DNA of 64,000 nt, taken from the NCBI GenBank assembly GCA_977030845.1, contig OZ365115.1:8990001-9054000 (forward strand), read 5' to 3'. Shown here piece after piece: positions 7,281 to 48,190 of this stretch. Position numbers and translations under genes: made by a program. The stretch comes from Fimbriosthenelais zetlandica. Taxonomy: Eukaryota. The number at the start of each line of letters is the position of its first letter. Within the stretch, counting starts at the first letter, position 1. The notes beneath the pieces were generated by a model. It was not told where the DNA came from. It saw only the letters and a program-made list of their open reading frames with translations, and did not search any database.

Positions 7281-8671
7281 CGCGTGAAGCGTGACCGTCA
7301 TTTGATGGGAGGGGGTGGGGGGCTCCATCTAATGCTGGTCAACCTGCCGGAGATTAGTTGCAGGTCAAATGACCGTCCAATGATGGTCATTCGCGGATCT
7401 GGGTCTAAGAGTGCAGGTGTGTCTATATGTAGAGCTATAGGTAGATCTGAAACTAAAGCCAGTGTTGTCATATCACACCAACATGAATCTTCTCCGGCCG
7501 TGCCCGCAGCACAGCCCTGTACAAGATTTAACGATGCGTGGCGTTGACCTAAACACCTTGTGATTCGGCAGATCTCCAAAGAACGACCTCGAGTTTGTAG
7601 GGGGCGTGTAGGAAGAAGCGTAGGCTATATTATCACTTGATTATATGCATTCCTAGATACGCCAGCGTCAAACCTGGGTACCGCATACATATACAGTTGG
7701 GTAGGAATTAAGGTCTGTGAAATTGGGTTTAATTTGAATCCTATGTGTAGGCCTAATGGTGAAAAGATACACATACATGTATTGCAGTCAGTCTGAGTTA
7801 AAATTGGAGGTGGGTGGGAGGGAGAGGAGCATGCATTACCCTACCCTTGCATGTGGAAAATATTAAGATAGTTGGCCGAGATGAAAGAAAAGATGGAACT
7901 GATACGACCTCCAAACATGCTTCATGGGTAAACAAGATGTTCTTCATTGAGGAACGTAAAAAAGATTGTTCTTCATGTCTTAAATTGGAATAGTTATTGG
8001 GGAGTAAACAGGTTGAATCATCAATGGTACCATTCAAACTGTTTGCTACCAAGGTACGAGTATATGGGAAGGGGTAGGAAAGATAGCCTACTATTTAAAA
8101 TGTTTAATAATGATTTTTCACATGATAAATTACTTTTAGAGAGCTTTATCAATTACAGAGGCATATTTAACATTAGCTTGATTATTAATAGTTGGGTGGT
8201 TGAAAAGATTAGGAGGCCTAAATGAACGCACATAATTAAACAGTTCCCGGTCGCTACATGGCTGTAGACATGCCTGCGAGAGAGGGAGGAAGTTCTTACA
8301 CCAACTGATCAGTCGTGACATCTGGAGGGAAAACAGGAAACGAGGAAGAAATTTAAAGCTAGATTGGTTTATGAATTTGTTAATAACGGATTGATCGTTT
8401 AGTATTTCTATCAATAGTTACATAATTTCACTGTCTACCCACTAACTTCATTACAAAAAAAACAGACAAATTGTTTCAAAATTCATCCCCAGAAAAACGA
8501 GATCTAGGCCTATAATTATGGATTTTAATAAAAATTGGCCAATAGGATTAGTTATTGTCGACATAAAATGTTCTGCTCTTATGGAACGGCAACATAATAT
8601 GAAGTGCCTATATTTTTTCTAAAAGTCTAAAATTTTCGTCCAACCATATGATAAACAATATAGTTGGCTTT

Positions 8672-10431: not shown

Positions 10432-13400
10432 GGTAGAGAGGCCTACTAACATAGCATATCTGAACTTTTTCACCTCCTTTTATATGACAACTGAAAGTAA
10501 CCAATAATATTGTTCAACATGCATTCCCCAACACATTTAATTAGGCTACATGTAGGCCTATATAGCCCAGCCTTTCCTAGGAACACGGCTGCACTTTTTT
10601 TCATCATATAGCCTAATTGCTGAGTTGGGCTGATATTATCACCTTTAAGTTTTTGTTGTTGCTTTAATTCGAGGAACCAGAAGGCTTAGGTTGCATTATC
10701 AACCTATAGATTGGAGTTGACAATAATTCCGTATCAGGCAACTAAGCATAGGGGCCTACTTTTTTCCCAATGTTTTTCTAGTTCAAATAATCAAGTGGAG
10801 GACCAAGCATGCGGTTTATATATGTAGGCGTGTCAGGACCGACAGTTCCGCAATATGATCAAAAGTTTCTAATCTAGAATCCGGTGCTCTTGTACCAGAG
10901 GAAATCAAATTGTAACATTGACTTCCTGAATAGCATTGGTCTGTATGTAGGATTTCTTTTAGTAGGCAACTTCTGGCAAATCATATGTTATATGTGTAGC
11001 CTAAGGATGTATTCTCAAATCAGATTCGAGAACCATATATGTGTAATGGCCAATGACATTAAGCGTCATATTGTCATTCACGGAACGTTTTTCAATGTTT
11101 AGTTAAATAGAAAATTATTATATATTAGGCCTACGTAACTCTTCTTGAAATTCTATAGGCCAATAGAAATGGAGATTTCAGTGTTGGTAAAACAAGAAAT
11201 GTCCTTTTATATTGTTGAATATTAGACAGTGAACACTGGAGGCTAGCCGTACAAATCAATGTTCTTTTGTATATCTGTTTGCTTATGACAGACTATTTTC
11301 GTTAATGGTATCTATTAAGCCAGCTAACCACCCTCATGAAAAATGTGAATGCATATAATAGGACATACTAAATTGCAAGAACATTACCTTATTCAATAGG
11401 AATTTACTAACTTTATTTAATAGGTTTTTACTAACATAGAATATCAGGCTTCAAGTTGATTATTAATAATTAAGAAAATATTAAATATAATATAGCCCTA
11501 GGCCTACTACAGAGAGAATTAAGAGCCAATCGAGCTGCTCACCTGTGTTGTGGCTGGGACAACTTGTTGACAGTGTGCTGCTCCACCGCCACTCCTACCT
11601 GGTCTGACAGCCCAGGAGAAAGAGCCTGCTATTATAGCATCACCATACAACAATGGGTGAAGCAAAGGGAATGTATATACATTCATTTTTCTAAGTCATC
11701 AGATCAGTCTACTATTCCACAAACAATATACATGTATCGGTATAGGCCTAATATAAGCTAATGCCGTGCAATTTAATACTAGGCATATTAGTTTTATAAT
11801 ATTCATTAACTGTGCAGGCCTATTGATTTAAATAAAGCCTTATAACTTTAATGATTGTGGACTTTAGACTCTACATCGATTTCCTTCGATCCTACGATAT
11901 TTGTATCTAGAACCTGCCATTTTAAAATATTCATTTTTTACATGTTATGACAGAAATTAAATACGAATGATTTCGAAACTTATATCGACTTTGTATGACA
12001 TTACAGCTAAAGTTCAGAGAAATCTAAGAATCCAGGGACTTTTAAATGACATAGGCCTGTTGTACAAGAATAAAACTGTTATATATCCTATCAGACTCCA
12101 TATGTTTCAATAGACACATTGCACAATACCTTGACAATAACAAAAAGGCAAATAAATCAGAAGAATTGTCTCGAAACTTTGTACAAAAAGCTACCAAAGC
12201 AGAAGGCACGTGCCCTATTAGGTGTGGCATAATATTATATACACCAATGCACATTAAGCATTGATTTTGTAATTAGAGGAAGATTGTAAAGCTATGCATC
12301 TTTGCACTTGGCCACAACCTTGACATTCAGTGCTTCTCTCTGTATGAGAGGCAAGCACAAGAAATTGTTGCTTGAAAATATTAACAAAGCATTTGTCATC
12401 CTTGGTGGTCGATAAAGACAGATCTTTCGTTCGCTAAGAAATAAGAACCTCTATTGATTTTGCTGGAATCAATAAATTGCATACACGCCTTCTCCCGACA
12501 ATAGAAAAAAATTATGTTCAGCCAACACTTTGTTTTGTGTTTAGGCTTACATCTATAGATTCCATGACAAACAAAACTGATCCCCTTTATATTTTTTCTC
12601 ATATTGCAAAGACAATATGGTATCTCACCATATCACTGAAATGTAAAATTCAGATGAAATATTCACGATGGCGTCAATAGCCACGAATTGCATGGACAAG
12701 ATTTCCCCATTAATCGTAATTAATGTTCTAAAAGAGTCTAAAAACTGGTTAAGCTATTCCATTATAGCACTGCAGTACATAGTACCTGTTTACTTTTGAT
12801 CTCTCATTGCTCTTGTATTGCAGGCCTACCGTGCAATGCGTTATAGTAATTTTCTGATAAATTCCCACGTTTATTCCGCCCTACTGTCTCCTATAATTTC
12901 TCCCTCCCTTTCACTGTCTAGTTTTCGTTTTCCCTGCATGGTTATAGGCAATCTGTACTTTCAAGAGTGTCGAAATTTATTTGAATTTTATGAGTTCATG
13001 CCCAGCCAAAAGGAATAATTTATCCATATTGGCCTAGATATCAATGCTTAATAACAGGTTAACTCTGTAGTCTTCCAAGACCAAAATTCAAGTAATTGTT
13101 CATCTTTTGGTGTTACACCCAGTATAGTTATTGTGTTAGGGGCTCTCAATTTCAGAGCAAAAGGTGGCCTGACATAATTAAGTTAATAGACGAAGTCCTC
13201 CTCCCAACAGGGTGAATAGCTGGGCTATAGCTGGGCCCTCCACCAATGGCCACACTCTACTTCAAATGCTGTCTTATCAAAGTCTCCTCGATGTCAAAAA
13301 ATGGTGTTCATAAGTTTATGAAATCAGGCCTACTCCAGGTCTACTGGGAAAATCATAGGTTTGCCAGTACATTGCAATGAGAAGTTGCATGAATCTCAAG

Positions 13401-34355: not shown

Positions 34356-37300
34356 TTAAACCGTGATGGTTTTATTGGCAATGCTGGCCTTGCGGCGTTT
34401 TTTCGAGCCCTGGGACGATTCCTGACTGAGCGCCACATCGAATTCCTCACTCTATAGAAGAAAATTCCTAAAGATTTAAATCTCAGTGGAAGAGATTTTC
34501 AAGGTATTTTAAAAATTATTATGTCCCAAATTACATGTCAAGTAGGTTAACATACTCTTTACTAGCACACTGGACTCATAGACAATTATTTGAATACTGA
34601 ATTAAAGAGAAAGAAAAGTGGAAATATGGAAAGTGGAGTGCTAACTTACATCCCCGTCCTTGGATCTGACACGCTTCCTGTTGCCACGAGCTCCTCCTGA
34701 CTCCTCGTTAGACTTCACCTGGGATTAAATTATTCACTCAATTCACTTCTATGAACTTAAGATAAAACATTTTTAACAGAGAATAAATAAATTAATTAAA
34801 ATTCAAAAATACAGACAATGTAGATGTATTAGGAAATGATTATCTAAAATTTCTATGAAACACGAGAAAATAAATCCATATTAACTTATTCTTAATTTTT
34901 AGAAATCTTTCTCTCGGTTATAGATTTAATTGATTGAAATATTCTGAAAGCAAGATATTAATTATAAATACAGGCACTTGGCGTCAATATTGTTTTCTAC
35001 CATGTGACGTGCCCACAAGCTTGTTATTCGTCAAGTTTACCCACTGTATCAGATTAGCTGAAAACAGTCTCAATAATAGAGAAAGTCCTCACCTAGCCAG
35101 AGGGCGTTAACATTGTGTCAACACCATACCAGCCAAAAGGCAAACACAGAAGTCAGAAAAACAAATGAGGACACTCGCTCCGTCACTGTCTTATTTTTGT
35201 CTTACACCTTGGATCCTTAGTGCAGGGGCAGATCCTGAATTATGTAAGGTGGGGGAGTCAGGACTTGTGGGCCCCCCACCACCCATCCCCCGCCCCCCCA
35301 ATTAACTCTCCAGAAAGAAATTATTTTGAGCGACAAAAATGGCTGAAAGTCGGGGGGGGGGGGATGAACCCCTGGAAGGTTCAAGAGCCCCCCACCCCCA
35401 CCCACTATGCGCCCCTGCAATGCAAAGAATAATAATGTATCTGAGAAAAGGAAACCTTTCTACAGGGTTAAGCCCCCTCTGGCACTTTGGAGCCCACCCA
35501 AAACTAATGGCCACAGTAGTCTACAAACTACCATTCATCTTCATTAAAAATAGACCGGCGAGGAGAAAGTTATGCTGCTACTCCTCAATGTTTGGCACGG
35601 GTGAAAAGACAGCTTCATAATCATAGAAATAGTTCCTTCCGTTTTTTAGACCAGGGCTGTGTCTTGACAATAAGTTCGTAGGTCCCTCAAAGATTTTTTT
35701 CGGATTTAAATATAGTAATATAATAACTACTAGCCTATAATTAATACCACAGAAAATTAGTTTAAATATTAAAGCCGATAATATTTCCTAGTGATTACCG
35801 CATCCATATTGCACTCATTTTTTTATTACATCCACCGGTGCAGAGCAAATTAAATTCTATAAAACAATTATTTTAAACAACTTAAAGATTTATTTTACTT
35901 TTACAACTTTACTCACCTCTGCGTCGTGCTTGCCAGCCGCAGGTCTACGTTTGCCGGTGATATTAATCGATTCTGCTTTGGACGTCAACTTCTCGATCTG
36001 GAAACATTTATTTTGAACACTTGATACAACATCAATCTTTGCAAGCGTTTAAAAACTAAAACCAATCGCCTTAATCAAGGTGATCATCAGAGAGGGAGAG
36101 TGAGAGGTGGAGGTGAGTGTGCGTGATGGTGGAGCGGCATAATCAATGATCCAGTCAAAGCTGAAGAGTATAGCACTTAATTTACACACTGAGTCCACAA
36201 TGCTTAATCTAACTATACTAGACTGTATCTTCACTTTAATCTTCACTTTCACTTTAATGCAAAATCAGAAGCTCTATAATACTTATGCAACAGGCCGTAA
36301 AAATTGTCACTTTTATTGGAAAATAAATTTCATTCATTATTCAGAATCACAAATTATGTTATGGAGTAGAAGTGTCATGTAAAAGAATTTTCTCAGCTTT
36401 CATGGATGGAAATTTAGTGTCATGTAATAATGTACCTTACCTCAGAGTCGATGCTTTTGCCTGCCTTTCCTACAGCTTTGCTTTTGTTCTCCTGCAATTT
36501 ATGACAAAATTGTGAACTTTCGTTTCTAGGATTATTGTAAATTTGACTCAAGTGGTCGACGAAAATAGTATACATTGATAGTTAGATCTATTAATGATGG
36601 GTTACAAAGTTGGTTAAACATGTAAAATAACATTTTTAAATAACATGGCCTGAACTTTGGATCTCCCATAGATGATATACAGTTTAGCAACCTATTAACC
36701 TATCACCAGCAATCAAGGGGAATGCTTCAAGATGGTTCGTCAGATTGTGTCAGCCCTAATCTCAATCATCTCATGTCCATGTTTCACACTTCAATCCATT
36801 ATGTTTTCAAATAGCAAAGATGACATGCTAACTGGGGAATAGACATGACGTGTGGGACGGGGAGGGGGAAGGGGAGAAGGGCGTTAGTGGGGTTGGGTGC
36901 CGTGGAGGGTGGGGATGGTAGTGGTATAGGGAGGGAGTGACTTTATAGAGTGAATGATGAGGATGAAGGGTTATTAAATCATTCATCACATCTCACACCC
37001 CCAGGGCGCTGCTCCATCTTCATCAAGGTTTACTGGTATTGATCGTAAAGTGATGAGTAATTAACACATACACAGGCAGCAGATTTACAACATTCTCCAG
37101 GCTTCCACACATTTATATTTTACTCATTTTTTCCTATAGTTAAGGAAGACGTCCCCAACCTGGGCAGGGGTAAAATAATTTCTTTTATCATTCCAAAAAA
37201 AAAAAATATTTATACCGTATTGCCCTAGTCAAGGACAATAATATTGCTAGGCTACTCACTTTGGATGTTGAGAATTGCTTGATTATTTCACAAGGAAATT

Positions 37301-40300
37301 TTGTTTTCAATTTTCTATAACAAACTAGTTTTCCACTTTCTTCAATAAAATATTTTTACAAAACATTTTTCCACTCTTTTGACAGCGGATACAGTTATTT
37401 TTCATTATGGGCAATTCTTATTGGAGTCTAGGGGTAATGGAGTGATGTCGGGGGACCCCCACCCCCGCCCCACCCCACTGATAATTATTACAGGTGAAGA
37501 AGCAAGTCTCTCGTGGCCCAGCTACCGTGATGATCTAATCATTCATCTGGCTGCCTAGCTCAGCCAAAACAAAAGATGAACATAAGATATTTATCATGTT
37601 CAATCATCCGTGACCGGCACGGGACCATCATTAATTGTCCACAGAATCACACACTGACTTCACAGAGAAAACAAAGCGAGGAAAAGAAGCTAGGCTCCAC
37701 TATCTCTGGACAGTTTTGTTTGGCAGAAGGTAGAAATCCTTTAGTTAGTGGTTGGGAGGGGAAAGGTGGGAAGTAATATCAGAAACACTTTCTGATGTGT
37801 ATAGGGTTTTTTTCCGGTGAGAGCAGATCGCAGTTTTTAGCTATGACAGTTGTTTGATAACTACAGTTTATGGGGGTAGCTATCTCTCCGCCAAACCCTG
37901 CGCGTAGAAAATAACTGCCTGGCTTAGACATTGATTCCGACAATCATAAAATGGAAAAATCACACATGTTCATAAATACCTTTGTAAAGAATGGGTAGAG
38001 TGTGAGATAGTAAAGATTACCTGTGTGGGGGGTTCCTCCTGGGTGCTCGGGCAGGATGAATCATATGTGGCTGTGTTAGGACCATGTATACGCAGGTAGC
38101 GGTTCAAGCCTTCCGTCTTCAGTTTCTCAGTGTCCACTAATTTCCCCAACCTATCAAAATATTTTCAAAACTTAATCATGGATCTCTCTGGGGGGATCGA
38201 TTCAGAGTAAAATAATATAAAAACACTACTGATATTGTAATTTGTTAGCTCCCAAAAATAAGAAGGAAGATAAACCCCGAGTCTATAGACAACCTGAGGC
38301 AGCGGAGAGAGAAGTTGGGGGTCGGGGTTCAATTACGTCAGGGTCCTAGCTTTTATCCACCGTGAAGCTTTCGTTACGGCTCACTGGTTTTGGGCTGGAG
38401 AGTGATTGGGTGGCGGGGCGGTCAATTCTAAGTAAGGGTGGTACTATAGCTTTAATGTGCTGTCAAGCTTTCTCCATGGCTAACTGTGTATTGCTTGGGC
38501 AGTGGGTGAGGAGGGTGAGGCGGGGGGGGGGGGGGGGAAGTTAGTTGTGCTAACTCTCGTCATGCCTGACTGGTTCTGACTTGACAGTGGCATACATGTA
38601 ATTTGGGGGGGGGGGGGGTGTTGGTAATTGGTTAATTGGTAGCGCGTGTTTGGGTGGCAGTAGGTTTGACGGGTCGCTGTTCAAGTCTGGGTCTGGGCTT
38701 AGCTTTTTACTCTCGAGTGATTGCTATAGCTTACTGGCGTGAGGGGAGTTGGGTGGGGGAGATGGCAACAGTGTGTCATAGCTGTTTAGAAACAAACGGG
38801 ACTGAATAGGAAGCTACTCTGAGATTCATATATACTTATAGGGAAATACATGTACGGCTCGGATTCTTGGATTTCAATTTTACCTTCAAAGGTTGTGCAC
38901 TACTCACAAAAAAGTTAAATCAGTAGCCGGCCTACATAGTCATTTCCAAATTCTAGAAACTACAAACCTGTATCTTCATATGTAGCTTTTTGTAAGTAAT
39001 TTAGGCTGTATTCAAGGTTCAAAACCTCAACTTTTCCAGGACATTTCTAGGACATTACAGATTTCCATGACATTTTTTAGGACAAGTTCAGGACGTTCCA
39101 GGAGTTTAATATTAACCCTCATATTTATTCAAGAAAGTTGTTTACTTTTTGCGTCCGCTGGTTTTTTTCAGGAATCCTTCCTTCTCGAGTCTGTTGACGA
39201 GGCCTGCAGCTACAGTGGAGTCGACGCCGAGTCTGCGGGCCAGGTGACTGTGTAGGATGCGGTTAGACTCAGTACAGGCATGCAGGGTCCGCCGCCATAG
39301 ACACGATGCCTGAAATACGCATTTACTTTATTAAATGGTCTTAACACAATTAAAATGGTCATAAAAGAAGTAAGGCTATTTTACTGAAGAAAAATTATTG
39401 AAAAAATGAATTTCTGGGGGCAAAATTTCAGAAACCTTTCCATGGCCACTAATACTAGTGATTTTTTTCAGGAATCTAATGAATGTTCTTTCCTAATTTT
39501 ACTGATAACAACTGTTAGAATGTTTTGCTACATTAACCCACAAAATACTCTGTACACTCTCATTCAAATTCATTTAATTTTGGGGGGAACAAAAGGTCTT
39601 TCCCGAACCTTTTTATCCCACACTTTTTTAAAATTAGAAATTAAAAGGAAATCATGGAATTTGATTGAATTCATTAAGGAAACCCACCTGGATGGCGATG
39701 AGGCTGAGGCCAAACAGTGAGGGGTCGGTGGGCTCCAGACCGGGAATATGAGGCTGAAAAGTGCGAGGTGGAAATCAATAGTACAATGAGAGATTCATGA
39801 GGTATAATGATATTTGATTGTTAAATCGATGTGTTTGCTTGAGCAAAATTGGTGTGATGGAGGCTGAGCATGGTAAGATGCCATGATAGGCGCCATGCAT
39901 GGCTGACCACCGCTCAGTCGTGTCTGAGGCGGGGTCTGTGGTCAATAATGTGGGTTAAACATAGGTCATCTAAGGTCATCAGACTCACTCAATTGTTAAA
40001 CACTTAAATGATGATATTAAAGGTTAACTAGCTGAGTCAACTGACTCAGTATCAGCCTTCAGGGTTCCCAGCATTTCATGGAATCCCAATTTCCATCCTG
40101 ATTTTTTCTTGGTGATTTTTCAAAATTCCAGGGTGATTATTTTCTGCAAAATTACCCCACAAAATACCGTTTTATTCCTTCTTCAACTTGAAGGCAAAAG
40201 GAGGGGGGAATTATGAAAGGAAGGCGTGTGATCGCACCTTCGAAACATCCAAGACAACATTCATACAATGAGAAATTGTTTGACATTTTAAACCAAATTT

Positions 40301-43300
40301 TTTATAATTCCCCTCTCAACTTCTCTCCAGATGGTCATATAATAACAGCAGAATTTCTGGAGTATGTATAATGACAATTTTTGACTTTTAACAAAATCAG
40401 ATTCATAATTTCCCACTCAACTTCTGGCCATATATCAGAGCTCAGAATGTCTGGAGTATGTATAGTCTACACTTGTTTGAACTGTTGGCAGTGGATGGAC
40501 AATTGTTGACAGATTGTAGTCAGTCAAGAGAGAAGTTTGGCATCACAATAAAGATTAAGGCCCGGGGTATGGGTGGGGTGTGAGGGGGTTTAATACCCGG
40601 CATCATGCACACACCCCACTTACTTAATGGATCCTCAGGCCCTCCACACACACACATAGAGCGGGGTCAGGCTAATATCATCTACATAACGACCACTGTG
40701 AACTCCTTAATAATGCAGCAAATCTCATCTAAAACTACTCAACACTAACTACATTACTGATTAAAAGATAAAACTGAAAAAGAAAGAAAACTGTGGTTCA
40801 GGTACTAACAAGGAAACCTGCTCTCAATATTACAATGGCCAACATTCAATACTCTATGTTTCGCTGAACAGATCATTGTTTTAGGTGTTAAAATAATAAA
40901 TTTTCATTAAATTTATTTTCTTCAAATATTTCAACCTATAGTTCAATTGCCCTTGATGCCTTCCTCTTTTAATCTTTCTAAATTCCACTGATCTTTTTAA
41001 CTTAACTGTTAAAATAATGTACTTTCAAATTTATTTCCATATTTCCTATTTTCATAGTTCAATTGACCGTTCCTTATTGATTTGTTCGTCCCGCCCATAA
41101 AAGAAATGACAAGAGTGGCTAGGTATAATTGATACTAAATACTGCATGGTTATAGATCATACCGTGTCATTTATATTATTAATGCTCAATTATCCCTTTA
41201 ACCTGACAACTCACAAAAAAAACCTAGGGCACGGAAATTACAGAAATCATACAAATAAACCATTTGCTTGTGTTGTTTCGGAAAAAGATTAGACAGAAGC
41301 TCTCATGTCAGAGATAAGATCATGGCTTCAGTTTGTTTTAGTTTTACTTCCAAAGATCTCTCTCGATCAAAAGAATTACAATTTCTTCAATTTGGCTTGG
41401 ATCTTCTATATTAATATATTTTATATCCCTACTAAAATCGTACATAATTAATATATTATGAATACCCATCTTTGGAAATGTATAATACCATCATGAATAA
41501 GATAAGATAGTAAATTAAATATATTTTAATAATGTTTTAAATGACTTACATTAGCACAGAAGGTACAGATGTGACTTTCAGGGGCCTCCTTCTCACTCAT
41601 GATGGCGAAACAAACTCCGTGCTGCCAGAATTTACACTGAGTACAAAGTATCATCAGACCATCGTCCTGCAATATCAAGAATATAAATCTTATTTGTTTA
41701 ATCATCTGGAGAAATAATGTGTACGGTCACTGTATGATTTTTTTTCACCAACGCAAAGTTCTAAGACAAGTTCTAAACCTTGAGCAAGACAAATTAAATC
41801 AATTTTAAAATTTAGATCATTCCCAATCCATCTTGATTTTAAAAGTTAAGACAATACACATGTTATGATGTACATTCTTCATATTCAAATATCAAAATCC
41901 ATGTCAATTTAATGAATGAATTGCTCACCTCGTTACAGCCGCATGGACAGCGGACAGCCTGGTCGTCATGATTCACGGCAGCAGATGAAGCCTGAGACCC
42001 TGTGGTGCTCACAGCCTGCTCATCCGCACCTTATAATATATAAAATTATAAATAAATACAACTTAATTTTAATATAGAATAAAAATTAAAAATAAAGGTA
42101 TGAGGGGGGACTCATACCTTTATTGGAATGGAAAGAGGAGACATATTTCTCATTAAAAATAATTTGTAGTTGACAGAAAATTAATTTTCAAGTTCTTTTT
42201 CACGTTAAAAATTAAAACATTGGGGTACCTGGTCGAGCAGGGGTAGCAGTAGGCACGGAATCTCCCTCCATGGGTTCATTGACACGACCACGAGCAGCCA
42301 GATTATAATCTCTCTGATTAACAAATGATGAGAAAATCAATACAGTGCTGTCCATAGGAACAATGTCACATATACATGTACGCAAATTAGTACTATACAT
42401 AAATTAATCCATCATTGATCGATTCAATAATACATGACACTAAAGACAAAGTGAGTTTACTGAGTTCAGAGACCAAATTTTTCCATCACTCGTCCATGAA
42501 TATGACAGGCTTTCCAGTACTAAATTTGCCATGACTCTGTGAACAACAGGGAATAAAATATTTATTTATTCTTTCTTTTTTAATAATTATAAAGTGCGGG
42601 GTTTGGCTGACCTGTATATCCATGGTTTCGGACTCCTCGTCCAGGCCGGTATTGTTGATGGCTTTATCTGCCTTCATCTTACCCTCGACCTGCGTCTCCT
42701 CCTCCCGACCACCTTCAGCTTCATCAAACTGCTTAGCGTCCGTCTTGATACGGAGCTTCACCCTTTAAAATGTCAATCAGAATTGTTTATTGATTTAAAA
42801 AAAGAATTTAATGTCTATTTATTACGGGATATAAGTTATGTTTGTACAGTTTCAATGACGGTTTCTTTATCTGGAAGCCTACTAGTACTATGGATTTAAA
42901 AAGTATATTAGATGAAATTCATTGATTCATTCATTTTTTTCCCGATTTTTCATCTTTTCGTTTGTCTCCTCCAATCTATATTTTCTTTCTAATTGCGATC
43001 TTTATTCCTTTGTCATTTTCAATGCTTTTCTCTCTCCTTCATTTCCTTCTTTCCCCCTTTCTTTGCTTCTCTTTTATCCATCTTTTCTCAATGTCTTTCC
43101 CGTAGAACAAGGACTGTGGTTGGTGCTATGGTCGGTCCGTCAATGGGGTGGGGGTCGTGTTGGGGGTGACAGGAGGACCATAAAAATGTAAAGTCCTGAG
43201 TGCCTGCTGGATATCATGTATAGATCATGACCGGGTCAGAGACAGGTCAGTTTACATTGCTTCATTCTACAACTGTATATAAAAGCAGATCACATCAAAA

Positions 43301-45807
43301 GCTCCCGCCCCTACAACCCTAACATCTACCCCCCCCCCCCCCCACGACCCACCCCCTCCCCACACCACCCCCAACAACCCACCAAAAACCAAGCACCCCC
43401 AGTCTTATTTTTTTTCTTTGAAATCGCTGACGAAAGCAGAACAGAGGAGTCACGACACATTGCAATCGGTGCCTAATCACTGCGCCTGATAACATCGCTA
43501 CCAATCTTAAAGCCTCGTCTTTGTCATTCGTCCAAACCATTTGGCAGGGAATGGGAATATAATTGAAAGGCAATATACGAGGGAAAAAATAAATTAGAAC
43601 ACAGCTCAAAGCTTGATAAATAATGATGAATTAAGAACAGTAACAATGAATAAAACATTGATAAATCTTGAAAATTCGATTTTAAAATATATTTGATAAC
43701 TTACGAATGGAAGGGCTGTGGTAAGGTAAGGATGTTCAGTATCATGAATCAAGAACATACATGTATTTAAGTAAGTTGAAAATGTGATTTTTTAATGTTA
43801 TTTTAGTTTTACTTACAGTGTTCACTGCCCCAACCTTGATGTTCATGGGATCCTCCTGGAATTTGAAGATATCAGTAACGGCGGCAGTGAAACCAGGGGG
43901 TTCATAATCCTCGGGGGTCACTAGAATTTAAGAGATAGATGTACTTTAAGATATAAATATTTTGCCCCAATACGATTTTCTCCAATTCCAATATATCTAT
44001 ACAGGATTACCACTAAAGTCCCGGGTAAGTCCATTTTTTTTTAATTTCCACTTTAATAGATTTCTTTTTTTTAAAACTAAAGTAAATTGTGCAGCAAAAT
44101 TACGTATAAAAATGAGGTAATGTAAATTAAATTATGGTACCATCGTCATAGTAGAGGAGCTTGACGGTCATCATGACGTCATCAGGTAATGACTGGAGTG
44201 ACTGTGTGAGTAGGACGATGGTCCTCAGTAGCCGCATGGTGGCCTTCTTAGTCTCAGCAGCACTGTTAGCGCTCGTTATTCGGCTGTTGTTCCTGGGTAC
44301 AGAAAATATGTTAAATTAACTCAAATTATGAAATATATTCTTCATGTATTTTTAATATAATAGAAGACTCATTTAAAAAAACTTTCCCCAAATATTCTTC
44401 ATGCCTGCTGAGATAAGGTTCAATATGTCAAGAAGATAAGTCGCTTGTCTAAATTTATTTGAATTTGGAAAGAGAATTAAATTAATTTACCTGTATATAT
44501 CCACGCCTGGTCCGTCAGAGTCGTTGTAGGAGAATTTGAAGGTGTAGGACTCTATGACTGTCTGTAAAGTAAAAGAAACCAAAATCTTTATTTGATAACA
44601 AAATAAATGTAAATTCTAATATTGAGAAAAAATACAATGTTCAACTTCTTATCTAGATACATCTTGGAATTACTTACATCTGGGTCATCCGGGTCAACAA
44701 AGATCTGAAAAAAACAGCCAAATTATAGCCAATTATTAAAATAGATATTTCTTTCTTTTTATTAAGAATGTTAACGTATAAACAGAATATTCATGATTGA
44801 AATAAAAATTCATATTTGCTTACCCCAATGACTAGCACACGTAACTGGATAGAGAAAAAGTAAAAATGACAATCAGCTCCATCGGTCTATCGGTCTTCTT
44901 TTGTAATTTAAGAATTAATTGTAAAATTTCATCTCCAATGTAAAAAAAAACAACATAGAAATGTGTCCTCATATAATACTGGGACTACTTACGTATTGTT
45001 TATCTATGGCATCAAAACAACCTTTCAGCCATTTAATAACCTGGCATGCCCCTGGACACGAACTGTCATCACGGAGAACTTTCAAGTTTAGATCTGTCAG
45101 ATAATTAAAATAAATGAACTTCCCACTTAGACTACGGTACATGTCTGTTTCTTTTCTTCCTTTTATTTTAGAAAATCATTTTTTTTAATGAAGAAATATT
45201 TTTAACAAATCGAAGAATCTGAGCACCCAATTAAAGCTCTATATTAATTAGATACATTATTAAATAAGGCTGAAAAATAAAATGCACTCATTTTAATGGT
45301 CAAATAGATAAGAAGTTTGTGTAGAACTAAAATTGAAAAGGAATACCTACCTTCGAGTACTCGATCTCCAAAGGCGGGCTCAGGAAAAACAGCTCTGAGG
45401 TAAGTGATACTGGATACAGCTACGGCTAGCAACTTCTTAACGAACAGTCCAGACTGCTGGGCGTTTACTTGCTCCGTGGGAAATACATTAGACCACTGAA
45501 AAGTAATTAATAAAAGAGGAATTCAGACATTTTTGTAGCCTCCCGGTACACGAGTAGAAATGACTCCCAAGACCAAGTCTCCCAAAGTCAAAGACTAAGT
45601 TTCCCAAGTATACAGGGAAGACCTTTTTGACAAAAATTTAGACGAAATTTAAGACTTTTTTAGGGCCTTTAAACTTTCAATTTATAGATATGGTCAAATG
45701 AAATGCCAATGGTGGCCCAATCCGCAATCGAATCATAAATTAAAGACACAACTCACCGTCCCCTGTTTTTCTTGGACCCGCGGGCCCGACTTCATTGCAG
45801 TCGGCAT
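34356..45807 (-). CDS. HORMAD1: Meiotic HORMA-domain protein (HORMAD1/2, Hop1-like) with PHD finger and winged helix, about 597 aa, 20 coding exons
   Basis: Exons (minus): 45807-45757, 45495-45351, 45093-44993, 44844-44824, 44704-44678, 44561-44491, 44292-44141, 43920-43817, 43715-43705, 42762-42612, 42313-42229, 42029-41929, 41666-41550, 39753-39688, 39309-39146, 38150-38021, 36491-36441, 35997-35917, 34718-34650, 34451-34356. All introns are GT-AG with continuous phase (1794 nt). HORMA motifs: [56 protein letters not shown]. C-terminus: SQESSQGSKKRRKASIANKTITV. Further phase-0 exons may have been missed. Confidence 0.92.
35223..35417. mobile_element. MITE-like G/C-rich insertion in a HORMAD intron
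   Basis: Ends CAGGGGCAGAT and ATGCGCCCCTG (reverse complement CAGGGGCGCAT), with internal poly-C and poly-G runs. No clear TSD. Confidence 0.4.
38347..38525. repeat. Degenerate tandem repeat, about 100-bp period
   Basis: tagcttt...aagcttt...ggct(c/a)actg at 38347/38365 recurs at 38448/38465, and each unit ends in a G-rich tract. Confidence 0.5.
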
Positions 45808-46905: not shown

Positions 46906-48190
46906 ATGCCACAGCCAGACGAGCCTTTCTACTGTTCTCAACAGATCAACATTCCTCCGGAGCTACCTGATATTCTGAAACAATTTACGAAGGCAGCAAT
47001 TCGTACACAACCGAAAGATGTCTTGGCGTGGTCTTATGCCTACTTTAGGGCCATGGCCAACAATGAATCACCTCCTGTGAAGGAGCGTTTAGAGATGCCA
47101 GTAGCAACACAAAAAACAGACACAGGCCTTACTCCAGGGCTGCTTCGTGTGCTAAACAAACAGGTAATCATTCTTGTGCAATTTTTTTACTGGTTAAGTT
47201 AGGTTGTCAAATTGCTACTATGTTTTTGTTTTGTAATACCTAATACAAGTTATGTTTAACTAAAGGAAAAATCTAATATTAAATAAGATAATGATTGTTT
47301 TAAAAATCTAGTGAGGAAAGTTTATTATTTGTTAAGGTGTGTGATTTAATTTCTTCTCTGTCTGAACATGTTGGTCATGTTGATCGTCTTTGCCATACTT
47401 CTACATTTCATAAGATCTAGACCTCTTATCATTTCATTAATATTTCAGCTTGGCCCCAAGAAAACGGTACCCTTGTCAATGATTGAGGAAAAGTGGAAAG
47501 ACCTCGCCCTACCTAAAGAACAGTTTGACGAGCTCGTCAAGATTAGCACATTCTCTGGAGACGTGGAATGGATTAAATTCTTTGCTCTAGCCTGTTCAAC
47601 TTTAGGAGAGGTGAGATGGTGTTTGCAGTATTTTCTATAGGAATGGTTTCTTTATATGAAAAATTTGTATTTCCTAGGTGATTTATCAATGCATCATTTT
47701 GGGAAAACCTGTTGTTTTGCATGATGTATATTTAATTCCAAAGACTATTTGTGAAAGGTTCCATGGAATTTTAACCATATCTGACTATGTTATATGCTTC
47801 ACATATATAACTGTTCAACCAATGATTATAAAAATATAATAACAAGTAAAGGACGAGTAAATGTAGTTTCTCGGGTTGTATAATGATTAATTCTTCCATC
47901 CCAAAATAATTAATATTACTTAACTTTATTTTTCTCTTCCCCTACAGAACATCACAGATGCCATGAAGACAATCTGTGAGATTTTAACAGCGGACCCTGA
48001 AGGCGGTCCGGCGCGCATCCCCTTCCCACTGTACCAGGAGTTGTATAAATACCTGGCTCAGGTTGATGGAGAAATCAGCCAGGAGCACATCAACACAGTC
48101 ATCTCCCACCTCCAGTACGACGTGGACAAACAAGACGGCATGGTCCAACCTAGAAACTTCCTCAGCTCAGACTGTCCAAACCTTTCATAG
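46906..48190 (+). CDS. ROPN1L: Ropporin-1-like protein (radial spoke RSP11/ASP family, RIIa dimerization-docking domain), 220 aa
   Basis: Exons 46906-47163, 47449-47610 and 47948-48190 (TAG), all phase 0. Motifs: MPQPDEPFYCSQQINIPPELPDILKQFTKAAIRTQPKDVLAWSYAYF, GLTPGLL..L..Q, EW.KF.AL.CS.LG, PEGGPARIPF. An acceptor lies directly before the ATG, and AATAAA is at 48720. Confidence 0.96.

Follow-up and report, generated by a model that had tools for sequence, protein, structure and literature searches.

Budding-yeast Hop1 is a meiotic HORMAD that carries a central region of PHD plus winged helix-turn-helix (wHTH) for nucleosome binding, and this region has been wholly lost from mammalian HORMAD1/2 and from most nematode HORMADs (PMC10907721). 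In a survey of 149 HORMADs, 36 were found to have the PHD-wHTH arrangement without the HTH-C extension of the yeast protein; these 36 come from Opisthokonta outside the budding-yeast family, Metazoa included, and predicted structures are given for the sea urchin and Nematostella regions (Milano et al. 2024; PMC10907721). Two animal structures have been solved, from the sea star Patiria miniata (PDB 9MYP) and the blood fluke Schistosoma mansoni (PDB 9MUG), and in both species the orthologous region binds DNA via its wHTH and engages nucleosomes in two parts. The same study notes a conserved pocket in the PHD, proposes from AlphaFold 3 models that it reads H3K4me3, and names Set3, PHF20, MLL5, and ASH1L as the closest structural relatives of the animal Hop1 PHDs (Rodriguez et al. 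2025; PMC12365614). Here we describe a HORMAD gene from the worm Fimbriosthenelais zetlandica, found in a 64,000-nucleotide stretch of contig OZ365115.1 (assembly GCA_977030845.1, positions 8,990,001 to 9,054,000 of the forward strand); we refer to this stretch as the window and give all positions within it.

We identify the minus-strand gene at 45807-34356, with high confidence, as a single-copy meiotic HORMAD, the ortholog of Hop1/HORMAD1, in which residues 332-475 form a chromatin-binding region of the Holozoa type. This identification draws on sequence, exon structure, domain identity, and orthology, and it is by homology that we infer nucleosome binding and any preference in H3K4 methylation. 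The original prediction, made from the DNA letters alone, had recognized a HORMAD with a PHD finger and a winged helix between 38021 and 42029 and had set it beside yeast Hop1, which has the region, and the mammalian and C. elegans proteins, which lack it. The identity of the protein agrees with our analysis, and the evolutionary contrast agrees with the published survey, in which mammals and most nematodes are the lineages of loss (Milano et al. 2024; PMC10907721).

The HORMAD gene encodes a PHD and a winged helix in one frame

Our gene model, built with tblastn and sequence inspection, comprises 20 exons that encode 597 residues in a single, unbroken frame, and all of its introns are of the GT-AG type. 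Exon 15 alone, used as the query, fetched the full-length homologs. From N to C terminus, the protein consists of a HORMA domain, the PHD-wHTH region, a disordered tail, and a C-terminal closure motif, distributed over the exons as follows:

45757 to 45807, minus strand: exon 1, with the start codon and residues 1-17; taken from the gene model, its N terminus matching homologs from residue 1
43817 to 45495, minus strand: exons 2-8, HORMA domain (45495-45351, 45093-44993, 44844-44824, 44704-44678, 44561-44491, 44292-44141, 43920-43817)
43705 to 43715, minus strand: exon 9, an 11-nucleotide micro-exon, CCCTTCCATTC, encoding PFH and part of a Ser, at or near the HORMA domain's end
42229 to 42762, minus strand: exons 10-11, acidic linker from the HORMA domain to the chromatin-binding region (42762-42612, 42313-42229)
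41929 to 42029, minus strand: exon 12, in which the linker ends and the PHD begins with its first zinc ligands (VRCPCGCNE; C334, C336), from the spliced frame and alignments
41550 to 41666, minus strand: exon 13, remainder of the PHD, with C348, C351, W354, H356, C359, C374, and C377 and the cage residues D341/D342, M345, and W354
39688 to 39753, minus strand: exon 14, PHD-to-wHTH linker with TDPxL...Q (residues 380-401), lying inside the 143-residue P. miniata alignment
39146 to 39309, minus strand: exon 15, wHTH core including the recognition helix (VNRLEKEG, R441), from PDB and Pfam matches
38021 to 38150, minus strand: exon 16, second strand of the wing (K456, LGK, K459), the region's final helix, which reaches about residue 475, and the first part of the tail, from the P. 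miniata alignment (residues 477-480 onward)
34356 to 36491, minus strand: exons 17-20, basic disordered tail with SQ sites, closure motif KKRRKASIANKTITV, and stop codon (36491-36441, 35997-35917, 34718-34650, 34451-34356)

Exons 2-8 have AG/GT borders throughout and are collinear with 10 homologs by tblastn. Matches to the HORMA family (PF02301) were obtained on three exon open reading frames (ORFs), at 45432-45244, 44237-44127, and 43921-43742, and residues 10-230 of the model align with the HORMA domains of homologs. Within the acidic linker, VKLRIKTDAKQF is retained in homologs, and the C-terminal KKRRKASIANKTITV aligns with the closure-motif end of ten animal HORMADs, KRRK(A/S)S..-...(I/L)(M/L)V. 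Each of exons 12-16 is preceded by a pyrimidine tract and AG and followed by GT, and when spliced they yield one open frame of 192 residues. Exon 12 in the correct phase reads ADEQAVSTTGSQASSAAVNHDDQAVRCPCGCNE (ADEQ...AVRCPCGCNE); a translation begun at the exon border meets stops, solely because the two bases there finish a split Gly codon. Direct translation of exon 13 gives DDGLMILCTQCKFWQHGVCFAIMSEKEAPESHICTFCAN, and that of exon 15 gives ASCLWRR...NRLEKEGFLKKTSGRK, also written ASCLWRR...VNRLEKEGFLKKTSGRK. Rfam, tRNA, and tandem-repeat scans of the 33-47 kb interval returned nothing relevant.

The 48-residue PHD matches the Pfam families PHD_5 (PF20826, E value 4.4e-11) and PHD (PF00628, 3.2e-6), and its top two structures in the PDB are 9MYP (4e-22) and 9MUG (2.5e-17). 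After these two Hop1 regions, the closest PHDs are those of Set3, PHF20, MLL5, and ASH1L, which are H3K4me2/3 readers. The 54-residue peptide of exon 15 again retrieves 9MYP (7e-15) and 9MUG (2e-7), together with the Pfam family MarR (1.5e-5). At the level of sequence, both similarities are far beyond chance, and the two entries, each titled "HORMA domain-containing protein," are the best solved structures for the PHD and the wHTH alike. The PHD had been predicted from exons 42029-41929 and 41666-41550, and this placement holds in full. The predicted winged helix holds in part: exon 39309-39146 is the wHTH core, but exon 39753-39688 is the linker that precedes it. Similarly, the predicted span of the region, 38021-42029, has the right coordinates, but the continuation of the wHTH in exon 16 (38150-38021) had been left undescribed. 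The linker exon, exon 14, encodes an EP-TDPxL...Q stretch ahead of A(T/S)CLWRR that is conserved in nine animals; searched alone against the PDB, its 22 residues gave no match, the query being too short.

Comparison with sea-star, blood-fluke, and yeast Hop1

The Hop1 region of P. miniata (XP_038051536.1; PDB 9MYP; PMC12365614) has the same order of PHD, short linker, and wHTH. The worm model is 59% identical to the 9MYP construct (P0021; P. miniata, 167 residues) over 143 residues, with model positions 332-475 aligned to chain positions 22-164, and the alignment is unbroken at the exon joints. Its zinc ligands are spaced as in the worm protein, its pocket residues (V, D, M, and W) are identical, and the full P. 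miniata protein shares the layout of HORMA domain, chromatin-binding region, tail, and closure motif. The S. mansoni region (XP_018653011; PDB 9MUG) belongs to the same fold family but is a more distant match.

The worm PHD is a complete C4HC3 domain in which all eight zinc ligands are retained, in two cross-braced sites (Cys-x-Cys...His-x2-Cys and Cys-x2-Cys...Cys-x2-Cys) with the ligand spacing of both 9MUG and 9MYP. From the spacing relative to S. mansoni, C334, C336, H356, and C359 constitute zinc site 1 and C348, C351, C374, and C377 constitute zinc site 2; the corresponding S. mansoni residues are C284, C286, H306, and C309 for the first site and C298, C301, C324, and C327 for the second. 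An additional cysteine in the worm PHD, C338, is not a ligand, and this extra Cys of the CPCGC motif is absent from S. mansoni. The pocket tryptophan, W354, corresponds to P. miniata W376, and M345 and D341/D342 are the same as in P. miniata. The conserved lysine-binding pocket has four positions, I-IV (Trp; Met or Leu; small hydrophobic; Asp), of which position III is probably occupied by V332. In the wHTH, R441 aligns with the P. miniata DNA-contact residue R463, whereas K456 and K459 stand at the positions of R477 and R480, where several other animals have Lys as well. The linker residues also differ from those of P. miniata.

In budding yeast, Hop1 carries an HTH-C extension, its lysine pocket is degenerate, and it grips bent nucleosomal DNA via a non-canonical surface. 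The worm protein, in contrast, has a conserved pocket and no detected HTH-C. Homology to 9MYP stops at about residue 475, and no HTH-C-like match follows the wing when the exon 16 peptide is compared with the PDB, a search that included no direct comparison with an HTH-C profile of yeast. With the exon 16 peptide alone as the query, no yeast Hop1 chain was retrieved, and the sole match, to a designed repeat protein, is spurious. Mammalian HORMAD1/2 and most nematode HORMADs resemble the worm protein in having a HORMA domain at the N terminus, a disordered tail, and a closure motif at the C terminus, and they differ from it in lacking the entire chromatin-binding region (PMC10907721).

Orthologs of the worm HORMAD

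Over its whole length, the model can be aligned at 48-54% identity with full-length HORMADs from Lamellibrachia, Lineus, Haliotis, Amphiura, Owenia, Pecten, and amphioxus. The worm's own protein was not found in the databases searched, where no entry exceeds 54% identity across the whole HORMAD; in the tree alignment, identity to Lingula is 57% across shared columns. All ten full-length proteins recovered via the wHTH exon contain both a HORMA domain and PHD_5, and in a wider homolog search PF02301 and PF20826 occur together in 116 of the 120 proteins among the matches listed. The HORMA-plus-PHD proteins listed span molluscs, annelids, nemerteans, brachiopods, echinoderms, hemichordates, amphioxus, cnidarians, sponges, and a barnacle. 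In the tree, the worm protein clusters with Lingula, Lamellibrachia, and two marine sequences (support 96/94), which marks the animal as a lophotrochozoan, probably an annelid-like one. The two nearest relatives in the tree are uninterrupted ORFs, on contigs of 2.2 kb and 2.5 kb, that carry both HORMA and PHD; because the ORFs are uninterrupted, these contigs represent spliced mRNA.

Alternative interpretations

Several points weigh against our interpretation of the gene. Histone-tail peptides showed no detectable binding by the orthologous region, and affinity was roughly equal for unmodified nucleosomes and those carrying an H3K4me3 analogue (PMC12365614). Two of the three arginines tested in P. 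miniata are lysines in the worm protein, at positions where Lys is common in other animals. Moreover, the junctions of the gene model rest on sequence signals and homology.

The first of these points, the peptide and nucleosome results, favors a reading in which the PHD is present but does not read histone tails and serves DNA binding solely as a scaffold; this is the situation in budding yeast, where the PHD and wHTH jointly grip bent nucleosomal DNA. However, pocket residues that have degenerated in budding yeast remain intact in the worm protein and are identical to those of P. miniata, and the closest PDB structures after the Hop1 regions are the H3K4me2/3 readers named above. The W376A pocket mutant of P. 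miniata lowers nucleosome binding without lowering DNA binding (PMC12365614), and nothing resembling a yeast-type HTH-C is seen beyond the wing in the exon 16 comparison. On balance, we find the scaffold-only role unlikely. The suggestion in the original prediction that the PHD may read H3K4 state directly fares accordingly in two ways: the pocket is retained and such reading has been proposed in print, but the ortholog showed neither peptide binding nor discrimination of H3K4me3 (PMC12365614). We treat direct reading of H3K4 state as a hypothesis.

Another reading assigns the PHD and wHTH exons to a gene or transcript of their own, nested downstream of a short HORMAD like that of mammals, and takes the fusion for an artefact of exons joined by eye. 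In its favor, the introns that flank the region are long, at 1.8 kb and about 1 kb. However, one frame continues across the 20 exons, and the boundary shows neither an in-frame stop nor a start exon. The closure motif, which HORMADs need, lies 3' of the PHD-wHTH exons, so a HORMAD without those exons would lose its tail too. Every full-length homolog has HORMA and PHD on one chain, and the uninterrupted, mRNA-type contigs of the nearest relatives hold both. Finally, the annelid Lamellibrachia satsuma and the scallop Mizuhopecten yessoensis have annotated HORMAD genes whose introns fall at the positions seen in the worm gene, following CGCNE, the final Cys pair of the PHD, ...Q, and GKGK(R/K). 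Taken with this conservation, a separate transcript is very improbable. Least credible of all is that the gene or its chromatin-binding region is a decaying relic free of selection, a reading for which we found no favorable points and which is opposed by the retention of the open frame, canonical splice sites, zinc ligands and key contacts, micro-exon, and closure motif.

In the L. satsuma gene, the deposited HORMAD protein omits 40 nucleotides in the middle of the PHD exon (locus L001, 17722-17761), between ...ILCANC and KHWQHG. An intron at that site is found in no other species, and the gap has the look of a patch made in annotation to bridge a frameshift in the assembly.

Micro-exon and neighboring features

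The 11-nucleotide exon 9 (43715-43705) is needed for exons 8 and 10 to stay in frame with each other, and it supplies the conserved PFHT/PFHS motif. It is flanked by a strong acceptor and a GTAAGT donor, and its skipping would shift the frame. Lamellibrachia (locus L001, about 11104-11115) and Mizuhopecten (locus L002, about 7748-7759) have this micro-exon too in their annotated HORMAD genes. A longer exon 8 that reads through its GTAAGT donor was considered and rejected, as it is the micro-exon that restores the PFH(T/S) common to relatives. Micro-exons of 11 nucleotides are often missed by gene finders.

Introns of the gene, at 38330-38760 and 43328-43372, contain long C-rich runs, as read on the minus strand, and loosely repeated units of about 100 nucleotides, which are probably decayed interspersed repeats; Tandem Repeats Finder reported only the short array at 43328-43372. 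A plus-strand gene at 46906-48190 lies head to head with the HORMAD gene, their starts about 1.1 kb apart, and the two may share a promoter region. The first long ORF of this neighbor has a weak RIIa-like match (PF02197, E value 0.0056) that falls below the family cut-off and suggests a ropporin- or sperm-tail-type protein.

Proposed function and significance

We propose that the PHD of the worm HORMAD packs against the wHTH, without the HTH-C extension of budding yeast, and that the region, by homology with the sea-star and blood-fluke proteins, most likely has a two-part mode of nucleosome binding. Its winged helix would touch DNA by way of the recognition helix and the basic wing (R441, K456, and K459), and the PHD pocket (W354, M345, D341/D342, and V332) would receive the H3 tail around K4. 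Such binding would add a chromatin contact to the binding of closure motifs by the HORMA domain. The original prediction of a second, axis-independent route for loading HORMAD onto nucleosomes is in agreement with what has been reported for the sea-star and blood-fluke orthologs (Rodriguez et al. 2025; PMC12365614), from which it would extend to this worm by homology.

The worm HORMAD is an ordinary ortholog, and its first interpretation, which matches the published view point by point, is right and not new. The literature already covers the region and its loss, its crystal structure, its binding to DNA and nucleosomes, and the hypothesis on H3K4 (PMC10907721, PMC12365614), and the locus adds little to this. 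The practical value of the analysis lies in a clean 20-exon HORMAD model for this genome, including the 11-nucleotide micro-exon, and the same HORMA-plus-PHD layout is annotated in more than 100 invertebrate proteins. To our knowledge, most invertebrates have no PRDM9-type hotspot system, and the same would hold for this worm if it is similar. It is conceivable, if doubtful, that the HORMAD PHD pocket prefers H3K4me3 in vivo and steers the break machinery to marked promoters; hotspot positioning via H3K4me3 is already an open hypothesis (Rodriguez et al. 2025; PMC12365614), which the window neither supports nor excludes. If it is true, the chromatin-binding region would be a hotspot-positioning device.

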